Shown here one piece after another: positions 1,345 to 12,170 of a stretch of 64,000 nucleotides of DNA; positions within the stretch are counted from its first letter, which is position 1, and every line of letters begins with the position of its first letter. Where the stretch lies: the NCBI GenBank assembly GCA_009103225.1, contig RHPI01002533.1, positions 1,233,842 through 1,297,841 on the forward strand, given 5' to 3'. Origin of the DNA: Chlorokybus atmophyticus (Eukaryota > Plantae > Mesostigma and Chlorokybus algae). Position numbers and translations under genes: made by a program. The notes below the pieces were generated by a model that searched no databases, was not told the origin of the DNA, and saw only the letters and a program-made list of their open reading frames with translations.

Positions 1345-2923
1345 AGCAGCAAACAGGCATTGAGAGGACAGCACTGTTCGTTAACTCGATAGTACCGTTA
1401 GGTTTAGAACATACCATAGCTACATTACCATGTATTAAACCTACCAACTAACTTGTCTGGCCGCATTGGCCTGGTAGGGAGGCTGTCCTTTAGCTGAGGT
1501 GAACATGCCCTACGAAATTCAAATAGCTCGCTGTTTTACCCCACAACTGAATGCGCGTAAAAAGAACGACATACGCACACAACATCATGAAGCAATGTAC
1601 AGTGTATAACCAACAAGCAGTGTGTACGTACATACACGCTCCATGTTGGTTATAAGTTCGCAATAGCCATGGGCATCACTCGGTATCATCATGCCCTGAA
1701 TGCATCAATGGATCCGTGTTTACATAAAAGTGAAAGAGTATCAGATTTGTGCATATATAGGAATTTCACGCTTTTAACTTCATGATGCTGATTACTAGTA
1801 ATTATGCAATTTTTCTCTCAATGATTATTATCCGTAGTTGCAACGTACGTAATTAAGACTGTAGCGGATTGGCCACTGCAATTATCACAACAGCATCAAC
1901 AAGCTTGTTACAATGTGTGGATTCAATGTTTATGATTTTGCGTTCAATGCGTCATTGATTGCCAATGTGAATGCAAACAAGTACGTTCATTGGCAGCTGA
2001 ACACTGTTAAGAGGTCGTCCATCTTTATAGCACATATATGTTAATCACACAAGCTCATGGTAATTGTACAATTGAAGTAAAAACTCGGGAAATGAATTTA
2101 GAGATTACAACTTTAAAGTTACTACATGATGCACGATTCAACCCTATTTGCGGGTAACTATTACTATAACACAAAATCGTGTATAAAACGCTTGCACTGC
2201 TTGAAGTTGCTTTCTAGCAATGACACCATTGATGATGCTAATATGTCTTTCATAAGTACTACGCAAATTCATCAATTTGTTAACGTCACAACAAGTTGTA
2301 CATTTTTATGTATGCAATTTCAATTGTCGCAAATATGTTTAATGCTTAAAATTGTCCAAATTTACAAGTGATAGCATGCATAGAGATACAACAAACGTAT
2401 ATAAACAATAAGCTGTGCATTTGCAATCAATGGACGGTCCACATAAATATGCCACAGAAGCAAAAAACATGTCAAACATAGCATATAATGGTTGTAATTG
2501 CGCCATGATATACGTATGTATCATCTATAGCTATTCAAGTAATGGCTTTGCATTGTTAAATATGTTTGCATGCATGCAAAAGCTAGCCCCACGAGTGAGG
2601 ATGGCGTATCAGGCTGACACTATCAGCAGATCGGTTATGTACAGGATAATTTCCTTATAAGTAAGTTACCCAATGTATTAGTTAATTTACTTATAAATAG
2701 ATTAACCAGTATGTAATATTGGTTAAATAATGCCCACATCGTTAACATAAATGCAATTCTTCTGTGTTACAGCAAGGTTTATGTAACCCCTTTGCACTAC
2801 AGCAAGTTGTAAACACCAAAGGACAGTACACCTAATGCAATGTTATACAGTTAAGGGCCTCTGGTGTAATCCAGCAGCAATGATGCAATTTTGCAATACA
2901 TGTGAAGATAAATGCAGCACAAT

Positions 2924-2924
<1 letters not shown>

Positions 2925-2963
<39 letters not shown>
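2925..2963. repeat. (GT)n microsatellite, about 20 units
   Basis: Directly visible gtgtgt run. Confidence 0.95.
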
Positions 2964-2966
<3 letters not shown>

Positions 2967-3858
2967 AGCACCATTAAGTAAAGCGCAGTTTTTTTGTTGA
3001 TTAATACACAATTGTGCAATATGAAGCTTTTTTCCATCAATAGGGTGCATTACTTATCACAACTTCTTATGAGTTCATGCCACAAGCTCGGTAAGTCTTT
3101 ACACAACTGCTGTGCCTACACTTGCCGGTGCCTTGTGATGCACATGTTTGGGCTGATTGAGACCCTCTTTAAAACTCATTTTCCCCATACGTATCAAACT
3201 TTTTGTGTCAGTGATGGTTCGTAAACCTGTGAGCACATGACTCATATAAGAGCTGCGCAAGGACAGCTCACAGATGGTGTGCAAAATGCAACCATACATA
3301 CGTACATACCTCATTGCTGGTGCATAGTGTGAGCTTGGTATATACCTCATGCATAATTATACACGCACATAAACAACTTGCTGCATTTAATATCTGTGCG
3401 CAATCCAAGGTATACACACTTCATACGATGTTGATGCTTGCATGGCACAGTTGGTTTCACATGTGCTTGTTGGTGGATAGTGTATCACCGTTGATTCCAT
3501 GTGCCATGTTGTTTTACTACACCCTTTGCATGGTTGCATGGTTAGGAAAACTCCCTCATCTAGCTCAGCGTCTGCCAAGGGGGGGCTGCCCAAAGTTTTA
3601 AATCCGAACACTGTTATCCGGTGGGCCAACGCGTTGTGCCTTTGCGCGGGAATCGCGCATTATGAAATTCCAGTGCCCCGACAACAGACTCGACACCGCC
3701 CACGTGTCCCTCGCTGGTGCTACCGCCGCCGCCGCCGCCGCCGCCGCTGCTCCTCTGCGCAGGAAGCCAGTGGCAGTCTGACTGGGAGGAAAGACAGCTG
3801 CTTGCCGTGGCTTGCTCCTGTACATGGCGGTGTTAAAGATATCTTGCGCGGTTGCGGC

Positions 3859-5368: not shown

Positions 5369-6000
5369 CACGCTCCGCTGCTGTGATGCTGCCTCCTTTT
5401 CTGGTGGTTACAAGTTGACTGCTAGCTGCATTGCTATGCCCTTCAGTACACCCTGCCGTTTGCACTTGAATGCCGACTTCAGTATATGACTTTGTAGATG
5501 AAGTTATGTTCAGATGATCAGGTAGTTATGTAGATTGATCAGACTTACTGCTAGGCAATTTTAGACAAGTCTTTGACTTGGGTTGCGTTGTATGTGCTGA
5601 TCATTGCAGCAGTGCGCACAAGAGATAGTACCCTAGATTAGTGCACATGTCAGAATGTGGGCCTGTACAGTGCACATTTTGAGATACAATCAGTCGCTAC
5701 CACCACTTGACTTGCAGTGAGGTTTGATTGAGGCGCTTTCATGTGTGCTTCGCATCATGTGGAAGTATACACACGCCTGGTGTTGTTGGCACTCTCATCG
5801 GCAACTGCTGTGGTCCTCTCAGTCGCATGCCGTGGAACAAAGTTGCAATGACTCCAGAATAACCGCAACGAGAAACCCAAAGTGGCATTCCCGGGAGATC
5901 TGCCAGAGCATTTATGACAGCGGACCAATATTGCTGTCACTGTGTGCGGGGTGGCCAACTGGTAGCTCAAGGATGACACTATGAACCTCTGTTGATGTGC

Positions 6001-9000
6001 CTAAGATGTTGCTGGCTTGGGCATTGGAGGCCTGCATGGCATAATACACAACTGAGGACACCCTGATCGTCGTACTTCCAATTGGCAAAATGATAGCACA
6101 TGTCAGTCATGCTCAGATATCCGCAACAAACAATAGTAGCTCAATGTTGGATTAGACTTGCATGCACAAAGACAACATCACAGTGTAACATGAAACACGC
6201 GCGTTGCGGTGCTGATGCAGCCGACTTACGGTGGAGGGGGCTGGGGTCGGCTTTGTTGTTGCTTGTTGACACCTGCTGACTCCTGGTTGCAAGAAGGTGT
6301 GAGTATGGCACCGGTTCATGCAACTTGACATCAAGTAGCTTGGTGTGTATGCACTCTTACTGCAAGCTTGAATGCCAGAGAGGCTGCTGGTGAACGAGGA
6401 GCAGGTGGAGGAGGTGGTGGTAGTGTTGGTGACTTCGCACCTGATGCATGCTGATTCCAACCTGGAGCTGTTGCTGATGTAGTAGTAGTTGATTGCATCG
6501 CAGCAAGTGCCTGCTGGACACTCTTCGCAGCTGCTGACATCTGGCTTCGCACGAACCCATTGCCCTCGCTGACAAGAGCAGTTTTTACCGACGTTCCGGC
6601 CTCAGCCCTTAACACTGGTGATGATGCAGGGCTGTCCGAAACGATTTTGTCTTGCCTGTCTACACTGTTGGAAGGATTGGACCGTGGGCTATTCAACAGA
6701 CCTGCCAGTGCTTGCTGTACTGTGGATGATGCTGTCACGCGACCTGCTGATGAAGATGTTTTACTGCGTTCGTCCTCTGCATCCGCTTGTGTGCTTTGTT
6801 TCGCTACACTCGTGTCCCTTCTGCTGGGCGAAGAAGGCATTGGTTGGTTTCCAAATTGGATCTTAACGACAAAATCCTGACTGCTGCTCTGGGATGGAGC
6901 CGAACTTTGTTTCAGCTTTGCCCAGGCAGGCATGGTTGCTGTTTCGGACTCACCCTCTGCATCGTCATCAGATGGCTGACCCTTGTTAACGTCGCGACCC
7001 GGGGAACCAGTTGGCTTCAACCTGGCCCAGGCAGGCATACCGGCTGAATGCTGCTCTGCAGCTGCCTGCTGGTTGCCCTTCTGTGGAAGCTGGAAGCCAG
7101 CATTAGGACTGGATGGCAGCTTTTGGCCAGATGTCACCGCTTGGGCTTGCTTTGCTGCGAACCCTGCAATTGCAGCTTGCTGGACAGCTGGCGTGGGACC
7201 GTGGGTCAAACTGGTTGGGTGCGACTGTGTCTGTGTTTCTGCTCTCTGCGTGTCTCGGAGTGTTGAAGTGGTGGATTTCAACATTGCCCAAGCAGGCATA
7301 GACTCAGTTTCTGCTGTCTGTCCTTCATCATGTTGTGCGCGGTTGCCATAGACCCCTACTGGCCTGAGGCTTGCATCAGGTCTTGGAGATTGTTGCTGCG
7401 TAACAGTCACATTGTGTGCAGTTGGACGCTCAACAGGTGCAACTCTGTGTTGTTGGGGGGTCGTATCTAGCTCCATTTCGCTTGTGACAAGATCAGCACT
7501 GGTCAAGCCAGTGCTCTTGTAGCCATCAATGCCATTGTGAGGTTGCTGTGCTGACTTAGGCGAGTTGTTGGGTGATGCCTCTGTCAGCAGTTTGCTGCGC
7601 AGCGTCTGAACAGTAGTAGCTGGTGGTGTCGTGGGTACTGCAGAGGCTTCTCTTGACTGCCATGAGCGAAGGGCTGCAGATACAGGGCTGCGGTCGCCAG
7701 ACTCAACCGCTGCTTTCTGTTTTGGAGTTGTTGGTCTGAGTCGGACACCCCTGATTTGCTCCAGGGAAACTCCATCCGGTTGACCGCGCGACTGCATGGC
7801 ATGCGCAAGCATTGCAGCTGGCTGTGTAGACGGAGCAGAAACTGCAACACTACTGAACTTTGACGACATCTCTGTGCTGCGAGGTGAAGGTGGTGCTGGC
7901 GTTTGGGCACCCACTGCACCAAGCTGTGCAGGAGCTGGTGTGTTGCTTGAAGGCTTCAACGGCGCACTTGGTGACTGTGGAGGTGATGTTGAAGTTGGCT
8001 GCAAGACAGTGGGCTTCAGTTTTGCTAAAACTGGCGGTGTAGGCGGCGTAGGGGCCGCTATGGGTGTCGGCCTCAACTGTACAGGGGCATCAACGGATTG
8101 CGAGTGCTGTACCATAGGTGTGGGTGTTGAACCTATGGACCTCAGGGTTGCCAAAGCAACGGGTTGTGGAGGCAGGGGCAGCGATGCTTGCGTTGTGTGA
8201 GGTGGCGGTGGCGGTGGCGGTGGCGGCGGCCCAGCCCCGGGTATGGGCTTCAATTGTACAGGGGCAGCAGGTGGAGTTTGTGACTGCGGCATTGTAGCAC
8301 TCATCGCTGCAAGAGCTGGAGGTGGTGGAGGTGGCGGAGGTGGTGGAGTCGCATAAGGCACTGTTGGAGGCATGGGTGGTGCCGAGGTTGTGGGCTTTGA
8401 CTGCACAGGGGCAGCACGTGGGGATTGTGGCATTGATTGCAGCAATGACGTGGGCATTGGAGCTGTAGGCCGCAAGTTTGCAACTGCTGGAGCCAGAAGC
8501 GGTGGTGGTGGTGGTGGAGGTGATGAATACGCATGAGCCGTTACTGTGACCAATGCAGGCTCTGATTGCAGGGGTACTGAAGGTGCGCGCGGTGAAGATT
8601 GCTGTGATGCTAACGATAGTCCTGATGTGCCTTGCCCGTGGTGTATAGCTGCAGGCAATGGAGGCGGACGACCACGCGATGCAAAGATGTCGGTGCGTGC
8701 AGGAGGTGGTGGAGGTGGTGGTGGAGGTGGGAGTGGAGCTTGGGGGACTTGCGATGAAGCTACGGGCTCCTGCATAGGTAGAGGCGGGACTGGTGCAATC
8801 ACTGGGGCAGTCTTCACTGCTGCAGGCTGCAGTGGTGGGAGTTGTGGAGCGCTTGACAAAGTTGCGGGTTTCAGCTGTACGCGAGGAGGTGGAGGTGGAG
8901 GCGGAGGTGGAGGTGGAGCAACAGCTTGTGTCTCTGATAAGGAATCAGCAAGTGATGGGGCAGGAACTTGAGGTGACCAACGTGGCGATAGGGGCACATG

Positions 9001-9340
9001 TGCGACGGGTTTCAATGTCGGTGGAGGTGGCGGCGGTGGTTTTGGAGAACTAGGGGCGGCGGTTATAGCTTGAGGGGGAGAAGCTGGAGTCAAAGGCACC
9101 ACTTGCCGCAGTGAGGCAGGTGTCAACTGTGCCAGGCCAAGGGGTGTAGGGACAGGAGGTGTCGATCGAAGTGAGGATGGGCTGGACTTCAGAATTGCAG
9201 CAGAAGGGGCTGAAGGCGTCAGTGAGGTAGGTGGACGCGATGGTGAAGGACCAGCTTGCGCAGCCGGTGTAGGTTCCAACTGTGCCGGTGAAGGGGGTGG
9301 AGGTGATGGGGTGAGCTTCAGTGCTGCTGGAGGTTGTGGC

Positions 9341-9371
<31 letters not shown>

Positions 9372-11302
9372 CACTTGGTGAGGTAGATGATGAAGCTGTT
9401 TTCGAGTGTAGGGATGGTGCTGGATCACTTTGTTTCAGCAAGGCAGATTTCTGCATTGGGCCTGCTGGTAGTGGCGGTGGTGGAGGCGGAACAGCTGCGG
9501 GTTGCAAACGTGCAGCTTGCGCAGCAGCTTGTGCAATAGCGGCTATGGAGACCGGGCCATTCCTTGACTGAGGAGATGATGGTGCTGGTGGGACATGCGT
9601 GGACCCTGATTGGGCAGGTTGCGCCTCTGTCGGATTGGCTGGAGTGGTGAGCGGCAAAGACGTGGGCGGATGAGGCGTTGAGGGAAGTGACATGTGTGAC
9701 TCCTCTGTACCTTGCGCCGAGCTCAATCCCAACAATAGAGTCGCAGAAGGAGGTGGGGGAGGGGGAGGCTGGTTGGGTGACAACTTTGCTGCTCCTTCCA
9801 AGCGTGTGAGCAACACAGGTGGGGGCGGCGGTGGAGGCGGAACAGACTTCGTGTCCTTTCCTGACACAAACATGGGAGGTGGTGGAGGCGGGGGAGGAGA
9901 ACGAGGGGAGTTGGAAGCATTCGTTGAAGAAATTACATGGCTATCAGTCTTTGTTACTTCGTCCAACCGGGCAAGTACTGAAGGTGGAGGTGGCGGTGGA
10001 GGAGGGGCAGGGGGACGTGTGTTTGCTATTGGTAAAGGCACTGTACTTGCTGGCTTCAGACCGTCTTCCAACCGGGCTGATGTTGAAGGAGCAGGCGGTG
10101 GAGGAGGCGGCACACCTCTAGCTTTGGTTCCTAATCAAGGACTTACATGTGAGCTGCTTTTTGCTTGCAATGCAGAACACAGCAGAACTGTGTGGCCAAC
10201 AAAAGCTTGGGGCAGTACATGTCCTGCCCTGATTGGAGTTAGGACCTAAGAGGGCGCTTTACCTGTGCCTTCAGCTGCATCATGTCGCGGTTGTTGAAGC
10301 AGTGAGTTACCCACTGCTGTAGCTGCCATTGACAACGTGCCACCTCCCGTGAGGCCAGCCCGTGGAGTGGTGGCTGCTCGTCCTGCAGGCATGAATACAG
10401 TCATGTTGTGTGCACATTCAAGCTGTGAAGAGGGTTCTAGACATAGGCAGCATTGGGCAGCCACTATAGAAGCCAGTTTCTCACCCAATGACGTGCCTAT
10501 AGAGTCAAACATGCTGAAATCAAACAGCTCAGGTTCCGTTGGGGTTGCCACTATAGTATGCGCCTCAACGCTCCATGTGTCTGCAGACCATGAACCAGAT
10601 GTTACCTCAATAGCCAGTTCTCATACCTCATCTGTAATGGTTGGTGTAAAAATGGTACCTGCATGGATTGGAGCATGCCTGGGCAAGCGCGCAGAAGGCT
10701 TCTTCTGCCTCAGCCTTTGCCACTCTAGCTGATCCAGCTGTGTGTGACATCCATGCAAGCGCTGGAAACCAGGACATCAGATATTAGGTTAAAAAAGCTT
10801 CTCAGGCACAATAGCAGCAGAATACCCTACCGTGGTTAGGACGTTGATGCTCCGCTCAGAGCTTGCGTTCGTGTCTACAAGAGCAGCGATCTGCGTCTCT
10901 AACCCACGCATGGTGCCAGCCACACGGTTAGTGACTTTGGTGAGAGCCATAACCGCATATTGTTGTGTGTTCTGCAGCGCACTGCAGCAAAAATAAAGGA
11001 TCAGGGATTGTTGGCTCAGTTGGGTTGCTGTGACAGCAAAGTTCTAGGTAAGACTTACTGCTTGCGGTCGTTTGCTGACAAGTACTGCTTCTCATGCAAC
11101 TCAGCACTTGTGTACAACTGATGGCAGATGTCCGCAAGCTCCTGAAGACACGCACAACAAGCAAAATACAAAATCAATGCTGAGAACATGCTTGAACCGT
11201 CAGCAGCCTGTCAACAGTGTGGGATTATGCTACCTGGAGACCAGCCTGCAGCGTGTCGGGTCCCACAGATCCATTATGGTGGGCATGTGGCACACTACCC
11301 AT
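6001..11302 (-). CDS. ABI/ABIL-like (SCAR/WAVE complex subunit) N-terminal domain fused to a very long polyproline region with a WH2-like motif; roughly 1500 aa
   Basis: Exons 11302-11234, 11141-11059, 10981-10831 and 10761-10659 splice in frame to ...LQELADICHQLYTSAELHEKQY...RKHALQNTQQYAVMALTKV...ERSINVLTTRLHGC, matching ABI/ABIL helix spacing. They continue into the 1260-aa Pro-rich ORF (6331-10113) containing SLEQIRGVRLRPT. Last small exons end at a TAG at 6001-6003. Extra 5' exons are possible. Confidence 0.75.
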
Positions 11303-12170
11303 GCATGCAGCAGGGAGTGTTTCGCATCTCCAATGCTGTCAACTCCTTCTTCAAACAGCTGTCATCAGCAGCTCACGTGGTGCTGCTCTGAGAGCTTTAC
11401 CGCAAATCCTGATTGTACGGCACAAGCAATGTGACGCCAGCAGCACGATATTCCTTGCTTTGAGTATACATAAGCATGTAAAGCTGCCATAACTTACAAT
11501 CCGTTGCCGGACTTGTGACTACAGCATAACGACGTGCTGTGGTATGCAATTCTCACGCATTGCATGCAGATTGGGCTAGAGCAAGCTCGCTAACTGGGCG
11601 ACAGTACTTGAAGCTGAATGAGACATCACACTTACGCTGTGTTGTGTAACGCTTCGCAAGCCATCCTCGGTGTAACAAGCAATCCCGCTGCTGTCGCAGC
11701 AACTCAAGAGCAACAGCTGCTTGGCACCCAAAACATCCAAGCTGATCAGCCTTACCACCATAAGCTCCGCGCTGAAGGTCTCCACCGATGTGACAGCTGG
11801 CTACATAGTTCAACACGAGCTATTACTCCTCCGCCGCCGCCGCACCCAGCGCCGAACACAAGTTTGGGCTGCTACTGGCTTGCTGCCTGCAACACTTGCC
11901 AAGCAGTGCTGAGGCAAGTTCCTACTTGTCTGACACAGTGGCGTCGGTTGAGACTGACTGCGATTCGGTTTCAACTGAGCCGGTTGCATGCATGGCTATT
12001 CCCGATCGGCAATGCGTCAGACTTGCATTGGCTTGGCGAGGCAGGCGCTGGCCTTGGCGACGGCGGCGGCGACGGCGACGGTGGTGGTGTCCTTGGGAAC
12101 GTGCGTGGCTTCTGGAAAGCATGAGCCTTATGCGAATGGTGCTTTCAAAGGTTAGAGTGGGCCGGAGGTG

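Follow-up and report, generated by a model that had tools for sequence, protein, structure and literature searches.

A probable ABI-family protein of Chlorokybus atmophyticus with a proline-rich tail of about 1,300 residues

What kind of protein places a short ABI-like head in front of about 1,300 proline-rich residues, and what might such a tail do? The question is raised by a minus-strand gene of the alga Chlorokybus atmophyticus, which occupies positions 6001 to 11302 of the 64,000-nucleotide stretch analyzed here (contig RHPI01002533.1 of assembly GCA_009103225.1, forward-strand positions 1,233,842 to 1,297,841; hereafter the window, whose numbering is used throughout). We consider it fairly probable that the product is an ABI subunit of the SCAR/WAVE type with a hugely expanded proline-rich region that recruits profilin-actin. 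The gene is already modeled in JGI/EukProt as P0001 (Chlat1/225/Chrsp1S03139, 1,482 aa), an unnamed protein without Pfam domains, and what is new is its identification as an ABI protein with an extreme proline-rich region, of which the ABI identity and the architecture are the solid parts.

The gene model was read from the sequence and from RNA junctions. The coding sequence begins at the ATG at 11302 and ends with the stop codon TAG at 6003-6001, in exact agreement with the outer limits, 6001 and 11302, of a preliminary description of this DNA. Logan contigs from four public runs were placed on positions 5901-11800, and ten intervals were missing from the contigs of runs X1 and X2, which belong to different studies. 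On the plus strand each of these intervals is bounded by CT..AC, corresponding to GT..AG on the strand of the gene, and therefore runs X1 and X2 contain spliced RNA. The X1 and X2 contigs gave the coding junctions 11234|11141, 11059|10981, 10831|10761, 10659|10580, 10485|10382, 10263|10130, 6361|6282 and 6230|6031, three of which (10263|10130, 6361|6282 and 6230|6031) were found in X2, the second study, as well as in X1. Translated exon by exon in phase, with split codons treated separately, the coding sequence consists of nine exons and 4,476 nt, that is, 1,491 codons plus TAG, with zero internal stops. Small 5' exons are indeed spliced in frame to the Pro-rich open reading frame (ORF), as had been described, but six of them rather than four precede the giant exon, and two tiny exons that follow it at the 3' end had been missed.

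Contig X1-5 runs from exon 1 into the start of exon 5, and contig X1-4 from the end of exon 5 through exon 6 into exon 7, of which it covers 750 nt. Therefore, the ABI-like exons and the Pro-rich ORF form one transcript, and the earlier proposal that both are carried by the same RNA is borne out by spliced contigs. We rejected a two-gene chimera created by assembly or annotation, which the spliced contigs and the phase-matched junctions speak against. The giant exon 7 (6361-10130) encodes 1,256 residues without a stop, as seen in the ORF, its translation and the RNA contigs, and its core is a 1,260-codon ORF at 6331-10113. RNA contigs cover it at 6360-8192, 8350-8876, 8765-9235, 8928-9324 and 9379-10129, with breaks solely at the longest (CCN)n runs, which are flagged as repeats, and no splice junction inside exon 7 was found among the run contigs. 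Two breaks, at 8193-8349 and 9325-9378, are bridged by none of the listed contigs, and one full-length molecule across them is presumed. Downstream, exon 8 (6230-6282) encodes ESAGVNKQQQSRPQPPP and is bounded by the junctions 6361|6282 and 6230|6031 in X1 and X2, and exon 9 (6001-6031), placed by junction and translation, encodes PPMPKPATS followed by the TAG. P0001 has the same middle as the RNA-supported protein but different ends: its first exon begins with MV where the RNA has MGSVPHAHHNGSVGPDTLQAGLQ, and it joins exon 7 (...AFKLA) to another last segment ending in ...NIGPLS (window positions 5912-6360), whereas the RNA supports ...AFKLA/ESAGVNKQQQSRPQPPP/P/PPMPKPATS. In the protein searches described below, single exons and P0001 served as queries, rather than the RNA-supported joined protein of 1,491 aa.

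On the basis of sequence comparison, the head is very probably a diverged ABI-family domain. Single exons, of 27-50 residues, matched nothing in Pfam or the PDB because they are too short, and the head query used for the searches was P0001:1-195. At E<=0.001, phmmer against 1.84 billion cluster representatives returned the protein itself and only two flowering-plant proteins (E 1.3e-4 and 4.3e-4). One of these is named 'putative protein ABIL5' by NCBI and carries PF27594 (ABI), a family that precomputed annotation assigns to 118 of the 120 listed relatives of this ABIL5 match. Further, comparison of the head with 20 aligned plant ABIL4/5 proteins by hhalign gave a probability of 96.3%, an E value of 1.9e-9 and 30% identity over residues 1-111. 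The resemblance of the N-terminus to ABI, first noticed by eye, is therefore more than chance likeness. The plant ABIL profile in turn had a sole match among all PDB chains, namely Abl interactor 2 of the WAVE regulatory complex (7USC, 3P8C and 4N78; E 5e-4). In a direct phmmer search of the PDB with the head, ABI2 was among only four matches, aligning residues 11-73 with 26-84 in the same register at E 2.4, which is not significant alone; a match to a 'Tet4 variant', a designed repeat protein, was discarded as spurious. A language-model search placed nearest a cluster annotated 'Abl interactor' (PF27594 plus PF07815; score 0.92, 208 of 256 features shared), with an oomycete PF27594 cluster second. 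A word-based protein search with the head yielded none among 696 candidates.

The alignment with plant ABILs can be followed through the exons. Exon 1 (11234-11302; MGSVPHAHHNGSVGPDTLQAGLQ), placed by the junction 11234|11141 and by translation, ends in LQ, which continues the plant ABIL motif S-LQ-EL (consensus KSLQELRDL). Exon 2 (11059-11141; ELADICHQLYTSAELHEKQYLSANDRK), bounded by its junctions, contains the first ABI helix according to the alignment to ABIL and ABI2. The long ABI helix starts in exon 3 (10831-10981; ALQNTQQYAVMALTKV...SERSINVLTT), and the ABI homology ends in exon 4 (10659-10761; RLHGCHTQL...LPRHAP), near 10669 (query residue 111) in the hhalign alignment. The positions in common with plant ABILs are E-L-x-D-L, Q-L, A, E, T, Y and V, followed by R.I..L..RL..C and LPRH. 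An AlphaFold2 (AF2) prediction with the alignment gave helices at residues 2-21 and 25-99, with block-mean predicted local distance difference test (pLDDT) values of 79-98 overall and 80-98 for the long helix, and then disorder. We take this short helix plus long helix to be the shape of the bundle-forming part of ABI2.

Between the ABI homology and the tail lie exon 5 (10485-10580), a linker containing ELFDFSMFDSIGTSL, and exon 6 (10263-10382), a Gly/Ala/Thr-rich linker whose junctions were read in X1 (10485|10382) and in X1 and X2 (10263|10130). The exon 5 sequence looks HHR-like by eye, a likeness unsupported by any match to Abi_HHR or ABI2. The HHR-like resemblance of ELFDFSMFDSIG found no backing in Pfam or the PDB: this stretch had no statistical support, residues 100-187 had no ABI2 match in the PDB, and the only PDB match, an unrelated cellulose-binding protein, was set aside. 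The intron between these two exons (10383-10484) is 102 nt long, in frame and stop-free (ORF 10246-10551), and its retention would insert 34 residues and leave the protein unbroken.

The tail encoded by exon 7 is disordered and Pro/Ala/Ser-rich, with 22.7% Pro, 13% Ala and 13% Ser. It contains 14 runs of 6-11 prolines, 13 of which lie within the first 643 residues and, by run counting, form a polyproline zone at 8200-10110. Many of the runs are followed by short hydrophobic-basic motifs such as ARLEDGLKP, VLARLDEVTKT, VQLKPA, VQLRPT and AKLKPT. The tail opens with three units composed of polyproline and xxARL[ED]xxxK, and L[KR]P is found 11 times where 1.5 copies would be expected; the count of 11 was reached in 0 of 5,000 residue shuffles. 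Copies of L[KR]P often stand in similar contexts (PVQLKPA, PVQLKPI, PVQLRPT and AKLKPT), which, together with the polyproline units, indicates that part of the enrichment stems from duplication of a unit within the tail. Proline is scarcer in the last 500 residues of the tail, and the RNA-supported C-terminus, ...AFKLA-ESAGVNKQQQSRPQPPPPPPMPKPATS, contains no SH3. No Pfam family matched in the tail, SH3 and WH2 included; ten tail cut-outs gave only noise (HVO_B0008_C, INCENP_ARK-bind and EIAV_Rev, E 0.03-0.2).

Two kinds of short element were observed in the C-terminal part of the tail. A motif search found the Trp-containing sequence MPAWA[MRK]LK, which has no Pfam match, at 7276-7299 (preceded by ETES), 7015-7038 and 6910-6933 (preceded by the acidic DDDAEGESETAT), all on the minus strand; two of the three copies follow acidic or Thr-rich stretches, and basic residues come after the repeats. 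In addition, the helix-like sequences TVQQALAGLL and SVQQALAAMQ occur where the tail end is poor in proline, at window positions 6400-6800 (exon 7 residues ~1110-1240); PAVQQAAIAGF, located further up, is comparable.

How might the two parts work together? In solved WAVE complexes, the corresponding part of ABI bundles with SCAR/WAVE and HSPC300/BRK1. By analogy, the ABI head of about 110 residues, with one short and one very long helix, would build the Chlorokybus protein into a SCAR/WAVE complex. A proline-rich region is found in animal and amoebal ABI proteins but not in the land-plant ABIL4/5 proteins that were fetched, and the disordered tail of about 1,300 residues is probably an extreme expansion of it. 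Profilin binds to proline runs once they reach about six residues. Each of the 14 runs of 6-11 prolines is long enough for profilin, and therefore the likeliest job of the tail is to concentrate profilin-actin. At the active complex, it may thus gather profilin-actin, and perhaps other polyproline readers too, and the profilin-actin held there would feed filament growth. The proline-rich domain of either Abi or WAVE was required for lamellipodia even when VCA was deleted (Buracco et al., bioRxiv 10.1101/2022.05.14.491902). From this result and the length of the proline runs, we infer that the tail recruits profilin-actin.

Several results weigh against this reading or are neutral to it. The head lacks VDHLG, which is invariant in plant ABILs, and has TNRVAG instead. 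Abi_HHR (PF07815), which is present in the local Pfam copy, had no match at E<=10. Foldseek of the AF2 head against the PDB returned nothing significant, only unrelated helical proteins at E>7, a two-helix shape being too simple to inform. Moreover, hmmscan of P0001:1-200 against the local Pfam copy, apparently one without PF27594, found no family; plant ABILs with precomputed PF27594 likewise give no ABI match in this copy, so the missing Pfam match of the head is no evidence against ABI. Regarding the tail, its repeat units look like recent internal duplication. A word search for tail relatives of 690-2,200 aa, which scored the 8,000 candidates with the most words in common, turned up nothing but P0001, the model of this very gene and the only database protein identical to the tail, and an atlas search with the tail gave a score of 0.75, below the useful level. 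With no detectable relatives, there is no conservation evidence that the tail motifs matter.

In a rival reading, the one put forward in the preliminary description, the tail would bind not only profilin-actin but also monomeric actin (G-actin), directly through SLEQIRGVRLRPT and perhaps through the many shorter helix-plus-L[KR]P units as well, which would make ABI an actin-loading or nucleating arm; we judge this unlikely. A WH2 starts with an amphipathic helix in which a conserved Ile follows A/S/Q/D/E, and continues with an LKKV motif (PMC8102491). By position search, SLEQIRGVRLRPT lies at 7729-7767 on the minus strand and appears to have both textbook features, a helix-type L..QI, with its Ile preceded by Gln, and then LRPT. 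Such a pattern is expected only 0.0013 times per shuffled tail, a figure for a pattern written after the motif had been seen. The roughly 7-fold enrichment of L[KR]P and the three opening polyproline units also favor this reading. However, neither the whole protein nor the tail nor cut-outs of 41 and 76 residues matched Pfam WH2 (PF02205) at E<=10, and phmmer of the motif region against the PDB, which contains WH2-actin complexes and WAVE1 VCA and would reveal WH2 peptides of WAVE, WASP or WIP, matched no WH2 or VCA chain. The distance from Ile to LRPT is presumably one residue shorter than in the canonical WH2 of WASP/WAVE, which also counts against direct binding. Furthermore, the motif lies about 500 residues before the C-terminus and has no amphipathic-plus-acidic connector/acidic (C/A) region after it, the next sequence, TPKQKAAVESGDRSPVSAALRSWQSRE..., not being acidic, and no orthologue shows that the motif is conserved. 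The WH2-like motif announced in the preliminary description is thus present where it was placed, whereas its identity as WH2 is not upheld by Pfam or the PDB; we treat SLEQIRGVRLRPT as a lead rather than a finding, a short look-alike of the textbook pattern. The accompanying idea of a hybrid subunit is reasonable where profilin is concerned, given how long the proline runs are, and weak with respect to G-actin. We also considered, and rejected, a fusion joining ABI to the C-terminal half of SCAR, as there is neither a terminal VCA nor a SCAR-like region.

In its boldest form, the proposal would be that ABI, and not only SCAR, carries an actin-delivery arm in which a profilin-actin rail of 14 sites is combined with a functional G-actin site of the WH2 type and with a dozen helix-L[KR]P units, which we regard as a long shot. 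If true, the Chlorokybus complex could build filaments through ABI itself, and the protein would exemplify in nature the mechanism, independent of VCA and dependent on proline domains, that was proposed on the basis of deletions in animals and Dictyostelium.

It is also rather unlikely, in our estimate, that the protein is a genuine ABI subunit with a tail that arose by lineage-specific expansion of low-complexity sequence and has no dedicated actin-loading role. Such a tail could act as a spacer, form condensates or offer docking sites to readers such as SH3 and WW, or it could be largely neutral repeat growth. The absence of relatives and domains and the presence of units as alike as after recent duplications fit such an origin. 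In contrast, an open frame of 3.8 kb has been maintained and is expressed, proline runs of 6-11 residues are a classical profilin ligand, and the Abi proline-rich domain is functionally important in animal cells (bioRxiv 10.1101/2022.05.14.491902).

Least probable, and in our view very improbable, is an ABI-derived head that acts outside SCAR/WAVE as the coiled-coil dimerization or targeting module of an independent proline-rich actin regulator: the strong divergence of the head (just two matches at E about 1e-4 in 1.84 billion proteins) and the lack of the plant-invariant VDHLG, the conserved plant C-terminal region, the animal HHR and SH3 would suit it, but the homology covers the entire bundle-forming region, residues 1-111, and an exhaustive phmmer search, which would probably miss a diverged paralogue, found no second ABI-like protein.

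This identification gives a name to a JGI gene model that had none. The proline-rich domains of Abi and WAVE, rather than VCA, have been argued to be the indispensable actin-building part of the WAVE complex (bioRxiv 10.1101/2022.05.14.491902). An early-branching streptophyte whose ABI has the largest such proline region in this analysis is a natural test case for the role of the ABI proline region, and it bears on whether the plant lineage began with an ABI proline region and then lost it. Should the tail prove to bind profilin or actin, it would offer a compact tool for work on the way in which filament growth is fed by polyproline arrays. In the literature, no description was found of an algal ABI with such a tail or of SCAR/WAVE in Chlorokybus.

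Several features surround the coding sequence. The 5' untranslated region (UTR) part of the first coding exon (11303-11408, minus strand) was defined by the sequence and by X1 contigs that join it to either of two alternative leader exons upstream (11408|11636 or 11408|11756). The leader holds short upstream ORFs, one of which, from an ATG at 11327 to a TAG at 11295, overlaps the main start at 11302 and hints at translational control. The 3' UTR extends below 5901. Poly-Gly ORFs on the plus strand over exon 7 (for example one of 185 aa at 9692-10249) mirror the proline runs and are not genes, because splicing and frames support the minus strand only. Elsewhere in the window, an AT-rich island at 1500-3500 has a GC content of 0.36-0.40 compared with 0.50-0.59 around it.

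Among known systems, the land-plant ABIL4/ABIL5 proteins (PF27594), which share the streptophyte lineage with Chlorokybus, have a homologous N-terminal helical domain with the elements ELxDL..QLh.AAEyxE...DRK...NT+.Y, R.I..L..RL..C and LPRH. In the fetched ABIL4/5 set (length window <=406 aa), these proteins are 207-346 aa long, in accordance with the earlier remark that plant ABILs are short, and 122 of 123 have no four-proline run. In contrast, the Chlorokybus protein is 1,491 aa long and contains 14 long proline runs, and it lacks both VDHLG and the plant C-terminal block VLPVRDG.... Plant ABIL has been described only as a short scaffold subunit (PMC3689024), and several green algae are reported to have no recognizable WASP-family proteins (PMC3298513).

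Like SCAR/WAVE and WASP proteins, the Chlorokybus protein has a long proline-rich stretch followed by a WH2-looking LxQIR....LRPT. Unlike them, it has no SCAR homology domain and no connector or acidic-Trp region, its WH2-like motif goes unrecognized by Pfam, and about 500 residues follow this motif, whereas VCA is C-terminal (PMC3689024, PMC3298513). The tail also resembles the polyproline regions of formin FH1, Ena/VASP and yeast Las17 in being a disordered array of many proline runs. In FH1, Ena/VASP and Las17, such arrays hold profilin-actin or actin. The likeness would be one of working principle only: the Chlorokybus protein has no FH2, EVH1 or WH1 and no sequence relationship to these proteins.

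Animal ABI1/ABI2 (PDB 3P8C and 7USC) differ from the Chlorokybus protein in possessing Abi_HHR and a C-terminal SH3; Pfam scans detected neither in it. Its proline-rich region is, by our assumption, about five times longer than that of ABI1/ABI2, with more and longer proline runs. The two share the N-terminal ABI domain, linked through the plant profile and through a weak direct match in the same register. Moreover, in both, a proline-rich region follows the ABI domain, and the animal one contributes to actin assembly (bioRxiv 10.1101/2022.05.14.491902).

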